Assembly (NCBI GenBank): GCA_000708835.1
Contig: DF237106.1
Location: 22,370-86,369, forward strand
Length of the DNA stretch: 64,000 nucleotides
Origin: Klebsormidium nitens
Taxonomy: Eukaryota > Plantae > Klebsormidiophyceae
Direction of reading: 5' to 3'
Of this stretch, positions 13,085-64,000 are shown one piece after another. Within the stretch, counting starts at the first letter, position 1; each line of letters begins with the position of its first letter. The translations under genes were made by a program, and so were the position numbers. Under the pieces are notes generated by a model, which was not told the DNA's origin, did no database searches, and was given only the letters and a program-made list of their open reading frames with translations.

Positions 13085-16000
13085 CTACGCACGCGAGCCG
13101 GGAAAATCTTCCCTCAATTCAAGGGCCATCTTCTCGTCCAAACTCCCTCGATCCGCGGCATACTTTGGCGACCCCACCTCTAGGCGGGCCAGCCTTCTCA
13201 TCGCCGCGAAGCGCTCGACGATCAGCACTCCAAAGCCCTTCCTCCGTTCGATGGCTTCCTTTAGCAGCGATCCGACGGTGAACAGGATCCCGAGCAGCGA
13301 GATCGCGATGGACGAGACGAAAATTTCGTCGTCGACGTAGATGCGAGTCGCCCGGGAGCTGCCCAGTATATACAGCGCAGACTGGAAGACCGACTGGGGG
13401 AGCGTCTCCAGCACGGTTTGCAGCAAACTGCGCGCCTCCTGGTAGTACCGAAAACTGAGCGGTTCCCCGCCCACCAAAAGATGCACCCCCAACCGCCCCA
13501 GAATACCCAAGACGTCAAACGCGGGCGTTGCCAACACTCCAAGCGGCCACAGAAGCAAGGTGAGCAGAAAGCGACGCGCGGAGATAAAGCTGCTTTCGCC
13601 GCCCGTTGAGAAGTCGGCGTCTGGCGGGCAGGGGGGCCAGAACCAGGCGACACGGACCCCCTGCGGAAGGGCTTTCCGGTCGCCTTTGCACGCCCAGCTG
13701 TCCGCCACTAGAAGCCCGGACATAAGGAAAGGCCCGGCTATGCACGGTAAGAGAACCCACATCGGCCAAACGCCCCAGACGTCTACCAAGACCAGGATAT
13801 TAAGGGCGACCGACACGGGCATGAACAGGGATGTCAGGACGCCCAGCAGCTCCTTCAGGTTTGCGACAATGCGTGACGTTCCGCCGCGCTCTTTTGGAGG
13901 GCCGGATCGCCGTTTCCGGCGGCACAACGCGGCGACCAATACCACGAGAAGAACGCCGAAGGTCGCCCACGTGACCGCCACCACGAGGACCGCGTTCTCG
14001 TTCTTGCACAGGTTCTTCTGGCGCACGTTTGTATAGCCCACTCCCACGTATGCCGCGCTCCCGGGGCCGAAGTCCAGCTTATCCAGGAAGTCGGTGTCGT
14101 TCAGATAGACGGCCCGTCCGTCCACCAGAAAGTAGTCGTCTCTGACTTGCAAATCCAACCGCCCCTGCATTTCTCCCAGCGTCTCCACCAGGTTCGCCCG
14201 CCTCTCTCGCAGCGACAGCGGAAAGATTTCCGGCGCGCCGACCGGGACGAATTTCGGCGACTCGCCCCGGACCATCACGGCAATCTTCCCCAGGCAAACC
14301 GTTCTTCTGGTCGCCCGCGAGAGTTCGGAACCGGAACCCGTGACGTCGAGAACGCAGCCCTTGGGTGAGAAGCACGACCCCCAGAAACGGATGCTCGTTA
14401 GTTGGACGCCGATCAGGCGGAAGAATTGGCAGGCGGACGGAACGTAGGACAGGTCCGGTTCAGGTGGGGCCTGGTTCAGAGGGAGGGTTTGGGCGTTGAC
14501 CGAAGTCGGTAAGCGAGCTGGTTTGCGAACACCAAATCAAATGCGTCAGGCTTTTCTATAACGTCCGGTGCAATTCTAGCTCATACGGAGTGTTCGAAGC
14601 GAAAAACTTTGTCGAATGCCTAGGTTCTGGTCTTTCCCGGCCCTTTCGTTCCTATGAGCCTGAAATAATCTCTAGGTTCTAGCGTGACGATTGTTGAGGC
14701 CACTTTTCCAGCTTCTTTGTTGGTACCGTGACCAGCGAAACGGCTACCATCAATTGGGACTTTGTTGGATGGCGGGTTGCCGGAAGATGTAATCACGGGG
14801 TCAACCGAAACCCACGTGCATCAGAACGGCAGGCAGCGTGCTGATATGTTCGAAATTCCGCAATCCTTGGCAATCAGAACGGATTTCAAGGCACCAGAAA
14901 GACCGACTCAATCGCGCAAGCTCGTCTCGTCCATTCACCTGGCTCTTGTACGTGAACTGCGCATAGGAGAGGTTCGACATCGCCGCGGCTTCAGGAGGAA
15001 AGAAGCCGTCCAAGCTTGTGTTCCGCAGCGACAGGTACTTGAGCTTCTTCAGACCGGAAAGCTCCGGCGGAATGGGGCCGGACAGCCCAGTGTAGCTCAC
15101 GTTCAACCGGGACAGGTTTGCCAGGTTGCCGAGTTCTGGGGGGATTGGACCAGTGAGTGCATTCTCCTGCAAGTAAAGTATGGACTTGAGATCTGCCGTT
15201 TCTTCTACTTGGCGTGACTCGATCTGAACTGTTGAAGAAGCGTGTCACAAGAGCTCACACCATGAGCCTTGTTCTTGAAATGATGGGCAATCAGCCTGGG
15301 GTTGAGTTTACCGGAAGGTTTGGTTGCTAAACCAGGGTCAGTAATCAGTTTATAGTATGATTTTTGACCAACAATCGCGTTGTAGCTATGTTAAAAACCT
15401 GGTATCTGCTCTCTGCTTGAGTCTGGTTATGATGAGTTTCGAAGCAGTCCGTGACCGACCATGGTTAACCGCCACAAAATCCAGTGGAACCGGGTAGAGT
15501 CCCAGAAGCTGTCCTGAATTCTGCTCCATCTTCGACGAGAAGCAGAGGAGACGTGTCAGACCATACAAACTTGATTACCTAGGGCGTCGGAAAGGGGAGG
15601 CAACTAGCCATAAACACAGAACGTTCAGAGAAGAGAACGTTACGACGAAGCCCTATGTAACCCCCAGTATACACAACTGTGCATAACGGGCCAGGTCTCA
15701 AGCTTCTGCCGGCCCGCTTGTGCGGAGAAGAGCGGCTAAGACAATTGGCAACTTGAAATACGAGTGGCATAGAAGCGACGGATAACAGACAGACGTTAGT
15801 TGCACTTCAGACTCGCAGTCTACCTACCTGCAGGAAAATGATCTGGAGTGACGTCACGGCCCCAAGCTCCCGGGGAATCGAACCGGTCAGGTTATTCTGC
15901 TCGAGGCTGAGGAAGGTGAGGTTCCGCAGGTTGGAAAGCGTGGGGGGTATGGGGCCCTCTAGCGAGTTTGCCGCCAACACAAGAAAGTTGAGCTGAGCGG

Positions 16001-18413
16001 CGGAGCCCAGTTCCGGCGGAATCAGGCCGGAAAGAGAGTTGTCGTACACACTGAGGTGGAAGAGGGCGGGGAGACTCCCCAGGCAGGCGGGGATCGTCCC
16101 GTTGAGAGCGTTGCCTGAGAGGCCCAGAATCTGCAGCCCTTTGGCGTCGCAGAGGTCGGTGGGAATCGGCCCCGAGAACCGGTTGTTTTCGAGGAAGAGG
16201 TAGATCAGCTGCGTCAGGAAAACCAACGGGGTTAGACATACGTGAGCGACGTAATAATTATACTGGCGCCGCTAACAGCGTGGACTTCAAGGGCAATTGT
16301 GTAATCAACGTCAAATGTGTCGAAGAGAGTTCTTATGCTTCTGTCAACCCGACTAGATTTCCTTCCGAACCAGGCGCTAAACACGGGTTTGAGGACAAAA
16401 CAGCTTACGCTTACGCTTACGTGTTGCACAGTTCATTGGCTCAGACCGTTCAAGCCCGTAGCAACTTCTCCTCACGAAAGAGGACTTCTGCTGGTACCAG
16501 CTTAAAGTGGACTAGTACGTTAACTCCTCAAAACCCCACCTGCACTACCACGCTAACGAACCAAAGAACGCATTGAGAACTGCAGCAACCATTCCGGCCG
16601 GCCCGCATAGGAACCCGCTTATGACCAACCCATCCAACCAAGAAGGGGAACGAAAGCGAAAGGCAAAGAGGTGAACGAATATGCAAACGCTGTACCTGCG
16701 TCGACTGGCCGAGTCCCGTAGGGAGCTCTCCCGACAGAAGGTTACCGTTGAGCGCCAATGCCAAAAGGTCGGGGAGCGCGGCGAACCCCGGGGGAAGAGG
16801 ACCGGACAGCTGGTTGAACGGAAGCAAGCAGAATTGGAGGCGCGTCAGAGCCGCAAACTCCTCCGGAATGGAACCCGTCAACTGGTTAAGACTCAGCTCT
16901 AAAAGAAGGAGCTTGGTTAGCGAACCGAGGGAAGCCGGAATAGAACCGGTCAGGTTGTTCCCGTTGAGATAGAGGAACTCTAGTGATTCGAGATTGCCCA
17001 ATTCCGGGGGAATGGAACCGCTCAGCTGGTTGACCTCCAGGCTAAGAGCTCAACCAGGTTCCCAAGCTCCCGGGGAACTTCCCCGGTTAGGTTGTTAAAC
17101 CCCAGGTTTAGAGCAAGGAGGCCGGTTAAGTTCCCGAGCCCAGGGGGAATGGTTCCGGTTAACCCGTTCTCGTCTAGGTAGAGCAGGAGGAGCTCGGGAA
17201 AGTTTTCGGGGCGGGGTATCGGCCCGGAAAGCAGGTTCGTTTTGAGGTTAAGGAAGCGCAAAGCGCTCGGCGTTCCACCCAGGTCGCCAGGAATGGGCCC
17301 CGTCAAACTATTGTTACTGGCGTCCAGAAGCAGAAGCTCCGTCAGTCGGTTGAAGCTCCCGGGAATGGGACCCGTAAAGAAGTTGTTCTGGAGATACAGG
17401 AGTCGAAGCTTGGCGGCATCGCCGAGCTCGAGGGGAATTGCCCCGGTCAGGTTGTTATCGTTGACGGCCAGGACTGCGAGGCTCGGGAGAGCGCCGAGTA
17501 TTCCAGGGAGGGTTCCGCTCAAACCGTTGGAGGAGAGGTTTAGGTTTTCGAGCCGTTGCGCGCGGCCGAGCTCCGGCAAGACTGGGCCAGTCAGGGAGTT
17601 GTTGGCTAGGGCTAACGTGGTTAGGGAAGGGAAACCGGCCGCGTCTACGGGGATCCCTCCGGACAGAAAGTTGTCGCTGATGTCAAGCTCGGTTAGGTTA
17701 ACGAGGTTGCCAAACCCGGAGGGGATCTGCCCGGTGAGCGCGTTCTGAGCCAGAGTGAGTTGCACGAGTGCACGCAACTCTGCTAAAGAGGCCGGAATTG
17801 GGCCGGTGAAGGCGTTCTGGGCGAGGTTAAGCACCGAAAGGTTAGCCAGCAAACCCAACTCCGGTGCTAAGGGCCCTGAGAACCTGTTCCCTGACAGATC
17901 TAGAATTGAGAGGTTGGTTAATTTGGTGACTGCCGTAGGGAAGCCGCCCTCAAGACCATTTTGCGACACATCCAGAACCTGTAACCTGGCCAACTCTGCA
18001 ATCTCTTCCGGAATGGACCCTCTTAGAAGGTTGTCAGACACGTTGAAATACTCGAGCTGACCAAGGTCGCCCAAACTAGGAGCCGCGTTAACCCGGGGTT
18101 CGAACCCTGTCAACCGGTTGCCAGACAAGTCGAGGGCAGTCACGTTCAAAAGGCCCCCGAGAGCCTGGGGGATTTGCCCACTTAACCGGTTGTTGGAAAA
18201 GTCGATGCCAGTGAGGAAACCGTAGTCGCCGAGCTCTTGGGGAATTGTGCCGGTTAGTAGCTCCCCCGACAAGTTGAGAGCGGCCGGGACTCCGAGGGTT
18301 AAGGTCGGGGTTAGCCGGTTGATCTCGACAATGGTTAGGGCTTCTCCTTGGGGAAGCGGACAGGTGGCGATAGCGAGAAGAGTCAGACCCAGCGTAAGGC
18401 GGATAGCGGCCAT
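13085..18413 (-). CDS. LRR receptor-like protein with C-terminal multi-pass XK/Xkr-like membrane domain (~1240 aa); frameshift at ~17041
   Basis: Exons 18413-16696, 16208-15828, 15166-14939 and 14470-13085. Signal peptide MAAIRLTLGLTLLAIATC is followed by roughly 28-30 plant-type LRRs (LxxLxLxxNxLxGxIPxxLG). TM1 plus RRKRR is followed by ~4-5 further hydrophobic segments including LETLPQSVFQSALYI. No kinase domain. The frame breaks inside an LRR near 17041. Confidence 0.85.
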
Positions 18414-39774: not shown

Positions 39775-40084
39775 TGCCTTGGCTTGTTGAAACTTGAGTC
39801 GGTGATATGGTTTAAGGAGCCCGGGCCCACGACTGGGGGCTGCTTTCTACTGCGGCTAGAATTTCGGGTTCTAACCACGCCGCTTTGCTGTCTGCACATG
39901 CAAACGTCCAGATGCTTACAAGCTTCAAATATTGTTTCAAGTTCAAACTCTGAGTCTTTGTTCAGACTTCAGGTCCGGAGGAAATCTCAAGATCAGGCCG
40001 TGTGTCTTGCTCGCAAAATAATCAGGTTGACTGCATACCCGCGGCATTTCTATAAGTTGACTGCCAGCAAAATGTCGGCGCCTT

Positions 40085-40140
40085 GCAGAATTCCGCGCGG
40101 CTTTGCCGTCCGAGTCGCGGCCGGCTTGCGGTCCGGCGCG
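40085..40140. promoter_or_regulatory. Conserved GC-rich upstream motif of F-box copy B
   Basis: GCAGAATTCCGCGCGGCTTTGCC...TCGCGGCCGGCTTG lies ~310 nt upstream of the ATG, within a flank homologous to 37367-37960. Confidence 0.55.
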
Positions 40141-40774
40141 GCTATTCTGGACGATTAGTTCTGATTCCCATTCGGTTCTGCTTCTTCTGGTTCCGCTTCT
40201 TCCAATCGGGAGATAGGCGCTGGATGCACGCCGACTCACCCTCGTGACTCACCGCGTGCCCATCTTTGGCAAGTCGCCATTTTTTGAGCTGTGCCAGCTG
40301 GGGATCGGACGGTTGAGAACTGAGCAAAGCATTAATGCCCGAACCCAAGAAGAGGTGTTAGCGCGCCAACCGTGGCGGCTTTGTGCGCGTTCTGCTTCCA
40401 ATCTGGCTCAAATGTTAGAAGACCTTCTTCTGACGACTTCTGAGGTCTTCCAACAAAAAGAATGCTGAAAGAAGCATGAAGAATGGTGAACGAACCAGGT
40501 ATGCCTAGGTTTAGACTGTGGGTTAAGAATCTAACCAACTTGCCAAAGATGGGACCCCGGTATAACAGCCACGAGACCACGATGGAAACGCCGGCCGCCA
40601 ACATGTCGGCAGTATTGGCAAGCAGCACCGGCCACATACTAGTACTCGAACCGAGCCGCAGTAGGTCAGTAATACAACTTTGGGCGCTATCAAAAGCGCG
40701 CGTCGCCTCATGACGAGCCACCACTCTATGTGGGCATCGCACGACTCATGGCAGGAGGGCTATGATGGTGTACC

Positions 40775-41264
40775 NNNNNNNNNNNNNNNNNNNNNNNNNN
40801 NNNNNNNNNNNNNNNNNNNNNNNNNNNNNNNNNNNNNNNNNNNNNNNNNNNNNNNNNNNNNNNNNNNNNNNNNNNNNNNNNNNNNNNNNNNNNNNNNNNN
40901 NNNNNNNNNNNNNNNNNNNNNNNNNNNNNNNNNNNNNNNNNNNNNNNNNNNNNNNNNNNNNNNNNNNNNNNNNNNNNNNNNNNNNNNNNNNNNNNNNNNN
41001 NNNNNNNNNNNNNNNNNNNNNNNNNNNNNNNNNNNNNNNNNNNNNNNNNNNNNNNNNNNNNNNNNNNNNNNNNNNNNNNNNNNNNNNNNNNNNNNNNNNN
41101 NNNNNNNNNNNNNNNNNNNNNNNNNNNNNNNNNNNNNNNNNNNNNNNNNNNNNNNNNNNNNNNNNNNNNNNNNNNNNNNNNNNNNNNNNNNNNNNNNNNN
41201 NNNNNNNNNNNNNNNNNNNNNNNNNNNNNNNNNNNNNNNNNNNNNNNNNNNNNNNNNNNNNNNN
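40775..41264. other. Assembly gap (490 N)
   Basis: Run of N. Confidence 1.
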
Positions 41265-42436
41265 GCGCAAATACTTCTAACAGGGTTTTGGAAGGCCAGT
41301 GCCAAAGCAGGAGCTAGTAGTGGTGTAACCGGGCTGGGTAAGCTTTCGTCAACGCTCATGAAACGCCAGGATTTTTGGTGCCGTGAATCAGCAGGGGCGT
41401 GCCACGTACGTGGCAAGCCCACATGAGACCAAACTGTGTGTACTTAGACTTCCTCAGAAGAGACAGAGGATGGGGCCCTGCTTCTCATTATTTTTGCTTG
41501 CTTATGGCTTTAACCCGGGTCCTGATCAGGTCACTAGGTTCGAAAACCTCGATATTTGATTGGCTTTTTTATTTGCCAATTGCCTGCTACTAGTGGTAGC
41601 TGAAAGGAAAGTCGTACAGCAGGTCATCCGTAGTCGAACCATCTTATGAGATGACACTGGCAGATTTAAGATCAATGAATGCTTATACGTGGCGTTCGGT
41701 TGGATAGCCCTGGGAGCAGAGCGTCGTTTTGTAGAGCCCATCGATAAGTCGACCCCTGGCACTTGGATGCGCAAACTGCACCGAAAGTGCTGCCGAAAAC
41801 ATATGTCAAGGTTACCTCCGACTACAGATCTGCAACATCATTTGCGCGGTACGCCATCAAATACGACTTTTGCACTTTCTTGCGAACGAGAAACTCACAT
41901 GACGCTCAAATGGGAACGGCGATTTGTGAGTCTATTGCCGTCATGGTAGTAGACCTATGAAAACGTGCCGGACTCTGCGCTGAAGTTCGCGGCTGCGACG
42001 GATTGCAAGTTCTTCATGACCTGCCGGCCAGAGTGATCCAGCATGAAGGTGTGGACACCCTTCCCGATGCAATGATGTACACAGTTCCCAGCTCACAGGC
42101 CCCTTTCTTCCTGTAAAGCCAATCCAAGAAGAGCATATTCAAAGCCCATAAGCAGGTGGCATTCAAAGAGACGGCCTTTGGTCAACTGCGTTCTTGAAAC
42201 CAGGTTGGAGTGCCTTCGTGTCGTTATAAATCCCTCCTATCTTTGGGACTAAGCATCACGTACGAAATTGAAGGCCCTCACGTCGTCGTCACTTTAATCT
42301 CCAAACACAAAATGACCCGGAGCACAATCTCGTTGCTGACGTTCCGGAGTAACAATTCCGAATTCTCTCGAGAGTCTCTGGAAGATCGGAACAGCGACGT
42401 GGCACTCAACTGCGTCTTTTGCACGCAAGCTCACCG

Positions 42437-61345: not shown

Positions 61346-62342
61346 CAGTAGTATGTCGATAGCCTCTTGAGACCGGACGGACTGAACATGTATGACATAA
61401 ATTGAAACCTGTGTCTAACACCAAGGATCAAAAACTAAGGGGTGTGTATTTTGAGGTCTAAAACGTGCGCCGGATTAGGGAATGTTTTGGACCACAAAAT
61501 TGATCGATTGCATTCGGTGACCCGCGCCAAGAACAGTTTGAAGGAGTTGCAGAAGTAGCCCATACACTCACATGCGCTCAATATAGCTTGGCTTCAGCCG
61601 GCCATACCATTTCGGGGGCCCTTGATTCGCGCAGGCTGCTGGCCTTTTAGCCACTTAGGCTCGGAGCTAGGTCATCGGACTGTCTAGCTGGCAGCCTCCG
61701 CTCTTCACATGTATGCCAGAAGTGTGCAGGTTGAGCTGCAAATCTTGGTGTTCGTTATTAATGAATGCTAAATATATATACGTTATGCACAGGCCCGTAG
61801 TACGTCCCGGAATTATGACATGATGCACTCAAATGCAGTACCGTCGCAAACCTACATAACTAGTCGCGAGCGAGCTAGACGCGTATGGAATCGACCTCAA
61901 ATCCCTCGTGAGGTTGCAAATGAAGTGGGTAGTTTCTGATTAAGTTTGTTGGTAACTTCCTATATCTGGCAACAAGCATTGCGCGCGGCATTGCCAAATC
62001 AGCTACGCGCCCGACTTAGGAGTCACCGCTCGTGTAGGCGTAATGGGCATTATAGCAAATAGTCGGCAGTATGGTCACTTTGTATCGATAGTTGTACTGT
62101 ACACTGCCCAAAATCTTCCGTTGAACATTGTCAAGTTCCATCAAAGTCGAAGTAGTCGCAAACATTGCTGGAATGTGTGCCAGCACACCAACATTGGCAC
62201 TCAGTATGATGTTGCACTTAACCAACATGCGGTATCCAAGGCGCACGGTTCGCTTCGACAAAGATTTGCTTCGCAATAACAGAAATAGAATATGCACTCG
62301 AGCTTTCACTTAAGGACTTGCATATAACAACGCATGTCCGCC

Positions 62343-64000
62343 TCATTCATGCCGGCGCTTCTTCCCACCGTGGCTCCTCCTCTCGTGCTTCTTTCTCTCA
62401 TGCTCGCCATCATCGTAATCACGACTCCGGCCTCGTTTCTCCTCGTGCCTCTCGTGCTTATGGTGCTTTTCCGTTCTCGAGGGCCTGCTTGGCCCCTCAA
62501 CAATGTCCTCGTTCAATTCCATGGCCGCAACGGACATGACCGCATGTGGCTCGCCCGACTTTCCCTTCTTCCGGGAAGGCTCGAACGCCGGTGGTGGTCC
62601 AGTCGACTTTGCGCCAGACCTCTCCATCTGAAAACAAGCACTCTTTATTTAGAATGTTGTCATCAGGTCAAAATGGAGCAAAAAACCATTTCGAAGCAGG
62701 AGTTCCTCCTAGGTGCCCTTCCAAAGAGGGAGGTTAAAGCATCGACCTGCACAAACTTGACTGGGTGACACGACAAGAGCTTTCTCTTCGAAGTCATTAG
62801 AGAATCCGAGTTACCGAACAAATCTGCTTTTGCCTTCGTCGCTAACAAGAATCTCAGATTTTCTGCAGCCCGTTCGCTCCCGGCTCGCAACAGTTCAACT
62901 TGTTTGGCAAGGCGCAGTCCCACCCAAACCAAGCAACCAAAAGGCTCTTGCACACCTCTTATCTTCAAAACACTTGAGAAGAAACAAAGGAATCTCGATT
63001 CACAGAGCATACCCACCTGCTTCTTCAGCAACTGTTCCCGCAGCCTGGTCGCCTCCTCGTCCTTTTCCACCCTCTCCAACCGCCCGGTGATCCCCCCCCG
63101 TTCCGGCACCGGGCTGAAACTCCGCCCCATCCGCTCGCCGTCCGGCCCCCGTCTCCTCAGTTCTGCCGGCGGCTCCTTCCGCCGATGCCGCTCCTCCACC
63201 TCCTCTGACGCCCGGAAATCCCTATACGGCCCGCGCGCGCTTTCCACGACTTCTCTCACGCCCCCCCCCGCCCGTCGTCGTCCGGGAGAAACCGGCCGCG
63301 GTCCTCGTACACCCCCCTGCGGGGCTCATCAACCGAGCCCCTGACCCGGTCGTCGAACCCCCCCCGGCGCGGGAGCTCCTCGGGAAACGCTCTCCGGGGG
63401 TGGTCGTCATCTAGAACCACTCGCCGGGGCGGATCGACCGTCGCTAAGCTTCGGACGACCTGCCGCTGGTCCGACGGATGGGCGTCCAAATCGTGCTTGT
63501 GCCGCTTTCGCTCGCGTTCCGGCTCCTCCCGGTCCTCTTTCGGGGGGCGCTTGCCCCGGTCCTTTCTGCCCCCCTCCTCCGAAGCCCGCCGGTCCGCGGG
63601 CGATGCCGAGAGGCGCTTACGGACGTCCGGCCGCTCCGCAATCTCGCCTTCCTCCCGTGACGCTTTCGACCGCCCGCTTAGACTAATAATCTTGGAACCC
63701 CTCCGCTCTTCCGCCCCGCCGGAGAGTTTCCGTTCGTCCGCACCCAATAACCGCTCCTCCAAACCGGCCTTCCGGTCTACAGACGGCAGTTTCGTCCGTG
63801 CGTCAATCACATCCCGACCGTTGTTGCTCCTCTCAGACACCCGGGTCTCGCCTTTAACCCTCTTTCCCTCTGGTTCATCAACCCTAACCCGCCCCTCCGC
63901 CACCTTGGGCCCCATTTCCGCGGTGGGCGCATCCCGCAGCAGAGCCTTCCTGCTTTCCCGACCTTCAACCTCGTCTCTCACAGGGCCTCTCCGAGGCTCC
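62343..64000 (-). CDS. 3' part of an Arg/Glu/Lys/Asp-rich low-complexity protein (possibly nuclear/RNA-processing), 5' end outside window
   Basis: Exon >64000-63017 (donor CAG/GTGGGT) is spliced to 62627-62343 (acceptor TTTTCAG). There is an apparent frameshift in the G9 run at 63261-63269. RSFSP/RSR-type motifs and a basic KH-rich tail are present. Confidence 0.7.

Follow-up and report, generated by a model that had tools for sequence, protein, structure and literature searches.

We analyzed a window of 64,000 nt from Klebsormidium nitens (the whole stretch of DNA under study) and found on its minus strand a gene of four exons, reaching from an ATG at 18413 to a stop codon at 13085-13087. 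All exon junctions are in phase 0 and GT/AG sites are present at every one of them. Compared to the ortholog L001, which shares about 85% DNA identity and whose exon 1 is one intact ORF of 645 aa, all four exons are conserved and the introns are not, and the identity climbs once past the acceptor of the last exon. The features of the gene are listed in Table 1. Searching the window by tblastn with the family to which the membrane domain belongs gave no second copy of this domain. We consider it likely that a single gene here encodes a type-I polytopic membrane protein, about 1,237 residues long and composed of a signal peptide, about 29 extracellular plant-type leucine-rich repeats (LRRs), a conserved juxtamembrane module, an extra transmembrane helix (TM1) followed by RRKRR, a five-helix bundle remotely homologous to the ND of Xkr proteins and a short cytosolic tail.

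Table 1. Features of the LRR-membrane protein gene, with positions given in the window
Feature	Position	Strand	Evidence and remarks
Exon 1	18413-16696	(-)	frame analysis; donor CAG|GTACAG after 16696
Exon 1, first part: start codon, signal peptide, LRR 1 to ~17, original frame	17049..18413	(-)	ORF and translation; Pfam LRR_1 E 5.9e-48; 24-residue register; dN/dS 0.15 vs L001
Frameshift site, LRR 17	17022..17048	(-)	7-nt gap vs L001; original frame meets TGA at 17024-17022
Exon 1, second part: LRR 17 to ~22, shifted frame	16696..17047	(-)	frame analysis; third-position bias; dN/dS 0.15 vs L001
Exon 2: 127 codons, LRRs, phase 0 at both ends	15828..16208	(-)	kept in L001; Pfam LRR
Exon 3: 76 codons, final LRRs, phase 0 at both ends	14939..15166	(-)	kept in L001; Pfam LRR
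Exon 4: juxtamembrane region, membrane domain, tail	14470-13085	(-)	acceptor CAG|G at 14471/14470, same in L001
Extracellular juxtamembrane region, ~160 residues, with conserved NLCxNxxA just before TM1	13994..14470	(-)	acceptor candidates; identity to L001; dN/dS 0.09
TM1	13922-13993	(-)	translation; AF2 helix 52-80, pLDDT >90
RRKRR stop-transfer cluster	13907-13921	(-)	translation
Xkr-ND-like core	13244..13873	(-)	
TM1-like helix	13781-13873	(-)	SVALN at 13799-13813 where the family has DLxTD
TM2-like helix	13685-13765	(-)	
IH1-like helix	13493-13579	(-)	carries a near-invariant Asp
Beta-hairpin	13454-13486	(-)	
TM3-like helix	13364-13450	(-)	LETLPQ at 13394-13411
Conserved loop LGSSRATRIYVDD	13328-13366	(-)	
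TM4-like helix	13244-13330	(-)	
Cytosolic C-terminal tail and stop codon	13085..13243	(-)	translation; AF2 helices 305-316 and 327-344 with pLDDT down to 40-69

The signal peptide (MAAIRLTLGLTLLAIATC...) lies directly after the ATG. In the ectodomain we counted about 29 repeats in the 24-residue register, with the plant LRR pattern strictly matched 26 times, and besides the LRR_1 match (Table 1) the LRR exons matched Pfam LRR_8 with an E-value of 5.7e-37. No Pfam match was obtained for the Cys-pair N-cap LRRNT_2, and the sole Cys upstream of LRR 1 is located inside the signal peptide. Pkinase was not matched in any exon, and the juxtamembrane region matched no Pfam family, although its final 50 residues or so (from about 14146) align family-wide through NLCxNxxA. 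Past TM1 the AF2 model shows five long helices and then a tail of about 50 residues; a helix segment reading IFVSSIAISLLG starts at 13324, downstream of LETLPQ. As an extra helix, TM1 is predicted to put the LRRs outside and to let the next helix run in-to-out as TM1 of Xkr does. The architecture that the earlier note had read from 13085-18413 was therefore recovered with every listed element on the minus strand: a signal peptide, 28-30 plant-type LRRs, no Cys-pair N-cap, TM1-RRKRR with several more hydrophobic helices and no kinase. Its juxtamembrane domain, given as about 200 aa, is present as well with about 160 residues.

As assembled, the product is truncated by a frameshift, a deletion that went unmentioned in the earlier note. 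The pairwise DNA alignment with L001 contains a 7-column gap, with 7 nt gone between 17048 and 17047, and the open frame resumes in a different phase from about 17047. It is possible, yet in our view somewhat doubtful, that the locus is a recently dead pseudogene, in which the deletion is real, translation ends past LRR 17 and no membrane domain is produced any longer. Such a reading is in line with the gap relative to an intact ortholog, with an in-frame TGA only 8 codons on, and with the position of the 7-nt loss away from any homopolymer, which is atypical of a read error; moreover, look-ups aimed at independent assemblies or transcripts returned none of the exact ORFs of the locus, and a search with the entire last exon gave no 100% match among proteins of 254-807 aa and hence no annotated model of the locus. 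However, the about 780 codons after the shift contain no other stop or frameshift in any of the four exons, and in the second part of exon 1 the differences to L001 are distributed 17/9/33, a third-position bias in the shifted frame. The dN/dS values downstream of the shift are 0.15-0.19 (0.19 for the last exon, as for the gene overall), with the exception of exon 2 (0.54), and from these low values it follows that any inactivation would have to be very recent. The deletion may also be accounted for by an assembly error or a strain polymorphism, and even a dead copy would leave the identity of the gene family unchanged.

By an exhaustive phmmer search the C-terminal domain was assigned to a family of 66 cluster representatives. 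For two independent structural models the best matches were Xkr9, Xkr4 and Xkr8, Xkr entries occupying the top ranks; the top Foldseek probability was 0.77 (hXkr4), and against the PDB neither model gave a match at E<=0.001, every E-value being >0.3. The predicted model displays the fold of an ND-type repeat: a splayed pair of TM helices is followed by a partially inserted one, by the hydrophilic, kinked TM3 and by TM4. At the level of profiles, PF09815 was touched by 2 of about 75 members scanned, both below its gathering score of 24.8 bits: P0048 reached 20.3 bits (E 3.1e-4, profile 3-174 of 337) and P0019 reached 16.9 bits (E 3.2e-3, profile 4-190 of 337). Although these two proteins have only about 25% mutual identity, both are collinear with the same first half of PF09815. 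The second Xkr repeat (CD) is absent, as five long helices follow TM1 and the PF09815 matches end at 174-190 of 337. Since only one of the two Xkr repeats is present, the domain is not a complete Xkr; it is likely that its five-helix core is a remote homolog of the first half (ND: TM1-TM2-IH1-TM3-TM4) of animal Xkr scramblases.

An alternative that we regard as quite improbable is that the C-terminal domain has no relation to Xkr and is a polytopic membrane module specific to the lineage, with generic four- or five-helix packing and convergent motifs. The Pfam matches are indeed all below threshold and the Foldseek matches are not significant. For the domain encoded in the window Pfam gave nothing relevant and no PF09815 even at E<=10, the family HMM retrieved no Xkr chain among the PDB sequences at E<=10 (only chance matches to RidA and a GPCR), a phmmer search of P0048 against the PDB gave nothing relevant, and a profile search of a collection of 5.8 billion proteins returned more algal members and no PF09815-annotated protein. 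Against this alternative stand the top rank, in two separate models, of the very family that had been predicted beforehand, the collinearity of the two divergent members on one half of PF09815, and the predicted topology, which agrees with Xkr once TM1 is added (next helix in-to-out, tail cytosolic). In addition, several motif positions equal functionally essential Xkr residues with identical spacing.

These motifs form the family consensus DxxxD on the TM1-like helix and ExxxE[ST]xPQ on the TM3-like helix. On the former, the first Asp is found in 42 of 51 members and the second, at i+4, in 21 of 51. On the latter, Glu occupies position j-4 in 20 of 55 and position j in 18 of 55 (Gln being found there in 23 of 55), followed by Ser or Thr at j+1 (50/55), Pro at j+3 (55/56) and Gln at j+4 (28/56). 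The spacing equals that of D26/D30/E137/E141/Q145 in Xkr8 and D125/D129/E313/P316 in Xkr4 (PMC12334663); the acidic residues D26, D30, E137 and E141 of Xkr8 are needed for scrambling (PMC8500837), and TM3 of XKR9 carries a conserved PQL kink motif (PMC8298096). In the window, LETLPQ has the Glu three residues before the Pro-Gln kink, so that the ExxPQ motif, which the earlier note had taken as XK-like, agrees with the TM3 kink of XKR9 (PMC8298096) and with E313/P316 of Xkr4 (PMC12334663). DxxxD, in contrast, is replaced by SVALN in this copy and likewise in the orthologs P0001 and P0083; the feature belongs to the family consensus and was lost here. Given the missing Asp pair and the 7-nt deletion, this copy is atypical: either it has been inactivated very recently or assembled incorrectly, or it is a variant that does not scramble. 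The full DxxxD and ExxxE..PQ signature is present in intact paralogs.

The XK/Xkr-like domain of the earlier note thus stands in part. The idea survived the structural comparison on which that note had let it depend, with Xkr entries as the top matches, and the resemblance extends to the sub-threshold PF09815 matches and to ExxPQ; on the other side, the likeness is confined to the ND repeat, and this copy lacks both TM1 Asp and carries a frameshift.

The members of the family include at least six paralogs from K. nitens and one protein from Trebouxia sp., so that the combination of LRRs with several TM helices, for which the earlier note had suggested searching other algae, recurs. N-terminal LRRs were found in 10 of 10 long members in one scan and in most in a second scan, and in P0023 (1,127 aa) and P0064 (974 aa) one uninterrupted ORF spans both the LRRs and the membrane domain. 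From the LRRs on nearly all long members and these two single-ORF members we conclude that the fusion is real: LRR ectodomains fused to a half-Xkr module in place of the kinase constitute a green-algal family. Some paralogs have been automatically named 'FLS2'. In the literature we found no relevant paper on XK-related proteins in algae, Klebsormidium or plants, and none on an LRR/half-Xkr fusion. We rejected as very improbable the reading as two genes, in which an LRR receptor-like protein would terminate within exon 3 or beyond it and a separate membrane protein would begin at the in-frame ATG at 14275: ORF callers do present the last exon of related genes as a protein in its own right that starts MVRGES (P0001, 393 aa), but these calls result from intron-blind ORF calling on genomic contigs, conservation starts at the acceptor at 14470, about 200 nt upstream of that ATG, with strong constraint on 14470-14276 (juxtamembrane dN/dS, Table 1), a protein made from that ATG would expose about 95 residues outside the cell and lack a signal peptide, and the uninterrupted ORFs of relatives connect the LRRs to the membrane domain.

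For the single fused protein the following course of events may be envisaged. The LRR domain would bind an extracellular ligand or partner, and TM1 together with the conserved outer loop (LGSSRATxIYxD) could relay this binding to the ND-like bundle, whose equivalent in Xkr8 holds the acidic and hydrophilic path that lipid scrambling requires. As output, the lipids of the membrane might be altered locally, by scrambling or thinning, or a partner from the cytosol might dock, and a dimerization imitating the ND-CD pair is conceivable. Ligand-gated scrambling, channel activity and a role in immunity or cell death, as proposed in the earlier note, are purely speculative. More specifically, the half-Xkr module could be a working ligand-controlled lipid unit, in which LRR binding switches scrambling or thinning by a single, possibly dimerizing, ND repeat, or controls whether a VPS13-like protein for bulk lipid transfer docks at the hairpin predicted where XK binds VPS13A; the single-repeat form would then correspond to the Xkr fold as it was before the duplication. 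We regard this proposal as unlikely; if the pre-duplication reading were true, the origin of Xkr-type scramblases would lie outside animals. An ND-only green-algal family would place the Xkr fold beyond animals, would add a third output module to the LRR receptors of the plant lineage, beside kinases and short tails, and would provide a naturally reduced protein with which to ask if the ND by itself is able to thin membranes or scramble lipids. The mechanism by which Xkr proteins are switched on is still debated, and Klebsormidium belongs to a lineage often used for studying the algal ancestry of land plants.

Compared to known systems, the algal protein shares with plant LRR receptor kinases and receptor-like proteins (RLPs) of the FLS2 type the signal peptide, a long run of 24-residue LRRs (LxxLxLxxNxLxGxIP) and a TM helix with a basic stop-transfer cluster. 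It differs from them in having neither a kinase nor a short RLP tail and instead five further membrane helices, in lacking the LRRNT Cys-pair cap and in its juxtamembrane module without a Pfam family. LRRC8/SWELL1 also combines LRRs with a membrane domain, but there the LRRs are C-terminal and cytosolic on a pannexin-like 4-TM unit forming a hexameric pore; it has no motifs in common with the algal family and ranks below all Xkr entries. With Xkr8, Xkr9, Xkr4, XK and CED-8 (PF09815) the helix order of the ND is common: TM1, TM2, a partly inserted helix, a hydrophilic kinked TM3 and TM4. The Xkr family is described as conserved from nematodes to humans (PMC12334663), whereas the host here is a green alga. 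Xkr proteins consist of two related repeats (ND and CD) with 8 TM helices and re-entrant helices (PMC8298096, PMC12334663); the algal protein has no CD repeat (TM5-8, IH2/3), no ND-CD cavities C1 and C2 and no caspase-cleaved C-terminal helix, and adds a TM helix on the N-terminal side as well as a very large LRR ectodomain, while this copy has S and N instead of the two TM1 Asp. An analogy may be drawn with the complex of Xkr8 with basigin or neuroplastin, in which a single TM helix bearing an extracellular binding domain is associated with an Xkr-fold bundle (PMC8500837). In that complex the ectodomain is of the immunoglobulin type and belongs to a separate subunit, whereas in the algal protein it is made of LRRs and is covalently joined to the bundle in one chain.

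A single minus-strand gene occupies the region 13085-18413; its frame, opened by ATG 18413, encodes plant-type LRRs behind a typical signal peptide, and its exons are joined by GT/AG introns at phase-0 junctions. For the last exon we found three candidate in-frame acceptors, and comparison with a relative identified CAG|G at 14471/14470 as the conserved one. Because identity to the relative also climbs from about 70% to above 90% immediately past this acceptor, we placed the start of the last exon there. In the first four coding pieces Pfam recovered LRR families only (LRR_1, E 5.9e-48) and detected neither an LRRNT cap nor a kinase; arranged in a 24-residue register the ectodomain comprises about 29 repeats. 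The last exon begins with a 160-residue extracellular region, to which Pfam gave no match, and continues with TM1, RRKRR and more hydrophobic helices. Translation and Pfam thus bear out the architecture described in an earlier note (signal peptide, LRRs without a cap, TM1-RRKRR, further helices and their motifs, no kinase). Database look-ups for the locus recovered no annotated product and no independent ORFs. Elsewhere in the window, a 2-kb block at 40001-42000 has a GC content of 0.39 compared to about 0.50-0.56 in the rest, and 62001-64000 holds the window extremes (GC 0.58, strongly negative GC skew of -0.23).

The original frame of exon 1 stops at TGA 17024-17022, while the LRR register carries on in a different frame. 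In L001, a contig of the Logan assembly of run SRR23617307 with an exon identity to the window of about 83-88%, exon 1 is one intact 645-aa ORF. Pairwise alignment with this contig places the missing 7 nt between 17048 and 17047, where the frame is broken in LRR 17; the window copy is locally damaged. Past the deletion the coding sequence stays open and the downstream exons are constrained; within the last exon dN/dS is 0.09 for the juxtamembrane region and 0.28 for the membrane part. The ratios show that the gene has experienced purifying selection; either the 7 nt were lost very recently, or their absence is an artefact of assembly or strain. The higher ratio of the exon 2 LRRs, compared to 0.13-0.19 in the other exons, may mean that a ligand-facing stretch is under relaxed or diversifying selection, although it is estimated from 123 codons only.

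Features of the LRR receptor gene and their dN/dS against the ortholog in L001
Feature	Position	Strand	Basis	dN/dS
Exon 1	18413 to 16696	-	ATG and frame/splice analysis	0.15 before shift; 0.15 after shift
Deletion/frameshift site	17022-17048	-	7 nt fewer than intact ortholog
Exon 2	16208-15828	-	phase-0 GT/AG junctions	0.54 (123 codons only)
Exon 3	15166-14939	-	phase-0 GT/AG junctions	0.13
Last exon	14470-13085	-	acceptor conserved in relative	0.19
TM1	13922-13993	-	encoded by last exon after extracellular region
Whole gene				0.19

With the last exon as query, an exhaustive phmmer search of 1.84 billion cluster representatives matched 66 proteins: six annotated Klebsormidium nitens proteins (some auto-named 'FLS2'), one from Trebouxia sp., and the remainder from JGI, ENA or Logan contigs. 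All 10 long members scanned first carry LRRs N-terminally and the domain C-terminally, as does the majority in a second set of more distant members. Two members, P0023 (1,127 aa; contig L004, 3001-6384) and P0064 (974 aa; contig L005, 3001-5925), hold LRRs and domain in one uninterrupted ORF, and the architecture is therefore independent of splice prediction. The fusion of LRRs to a multi-TM domain is real and recurrent. The family alignment A5, together with contigs L003 and L005 and protein P0095, separates a Klebsormidium type with PQ and GSSRAT from a Trebouxia type with PT and GN[KR]PS, DC[IV]SG instead of DLxTD, and an insertion of about 40 residues ahead of the TM3-like helix. The ORF-called member P0017 (290 aa) carries Sel1 repeats (PF08238, E 5e-18) directly after the domain, which suggests a cytosolic protein-binding tail in some members.

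The domain had been proposed to be XK/Xkr-like. The window protein gave no match to the Pfam XK-related family PF09815 at E<=10, and the family HMM recovered no Xkr chain from PDB sequences. A confident AlphaFold2 model (38-sequence alignment; pLDDT 82, pTM 0.79) shows TM1, helices 92-122, 128-154 and 190-218, a small beta-hairpin, and helices 233-261 and 273-301; Foldseek returned no significant match for it, and the highest probability of the run (0.77) fell on hXkr4. P0048 (E 3.1e-4, 20.3 bits, positions 3-174 of 337) and the K. nitens paralog P0019 (E 3.2e-3, 16.9 bits, positions 4-190) match PF09815 under its gathering score and over the first half of the profile alone. Xkr proteins consist of two related repeats, in each of which a partly inserted helix accompanies four TM helices (PMC8298096). 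One of these repeats, the N-terminal ND, is the counterpart of the algal domain; the C-terminal CD is absent after the ND-like bundle, which therefore places the domain outside PF09815 proper. Structure, profile matches and motifs converge. The most fitting description is that of a remote, single-repeat Xkr homolog, with solid but not decisive support.

Among 56 aligned members, we found D-[LIVC]-x-[TS]-D (D(i) 42/51, D(i+4) 21/51) on the helix that follows TM1 and R/H...E-x-x-x-E-[ST]-x-P-Q on helix 233-261 (E(j-4) 20/55, E(j) 18/55, S/T 50/55, P 55/56, Q 28/56). Identically spaced residues have been published for Xkr8, where scrambling requires D26, D30, E137 and E141 and the proposed path includes Q145 (PMC8500837), for the Xkr4 'stairway' of D125, D129 and E313 with a kink at P316 (PMC12334663), and for the hydrophilic TM3 of XKR9, kinked at a conserved PQL (PMC8298096). 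We also observed an Asp of the IH1-like helix (13505-13522) in 55/56 members, and an outer loop LGSSRATxIYxD (13328-13366; Gly invariant) that is the best-conserved stretch of the family; for neither did we find a counterpart described in the cited Xkr papers. In the window protein and in P0001, P0083 and P0085, its close orthologs, SVALN or HIVLN stands at the position of the DLxTD seen in most members, while [LV]ETLPQ is retained. Scrambling by Xkr8 drops markedly when either Asp is changed to Ala (PMC8500837). Should the family scramble lipids, this ortholog group may do so differently or not at all; its membrane-part dN/dS nevertheless indicates purifying selection.

The predicted topology is internally consistent. 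The LRRs would lie outside and RRKRR inside; the TM1-like helix would run in-to-out, the TM2-like helix would return out-to-in, and both the IH1-like helix and the beta-hairpin would be on the cytosolic face. The TM3-like helix would then run in-to-out with the LGSSRATxIYxD loop outside, and the TM4-like helix out-to-in with a cytosolic tail. Ligand binding could be coupled to the bundle by conserved outer elements (NLCxNxxA before TM1, the juxtamembrane region, the TM3-TM4 loop). As output, the acidic vestibule could scramble lipids or thin the membrane, possibly in a dimer mimicking ND-CD; alternatively, a cytosolic partner could be recruited. In XK a beta-hairpin binds the PH domain of VPS13A (PMC9436381), and the predicted algal hairpin lies in the corresponding loop. 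Our literature search found no paper in which XK-related proteins are linked with algae, with Klebsormidium or with plant LRR receptors, and the Xkr4 paper gives the range over which the family is conserved as nematodes to humans (PMC12334663). LRR receptors and the Xkr fold are known kinds; their joining in this algal family would be a new combination. Whereas Xkr proteins have two repeats, the algal domain has one ND-like repeat only, preceded by an extra TM1 that would orient the bundle as in Xkr and place the LRRs outside.
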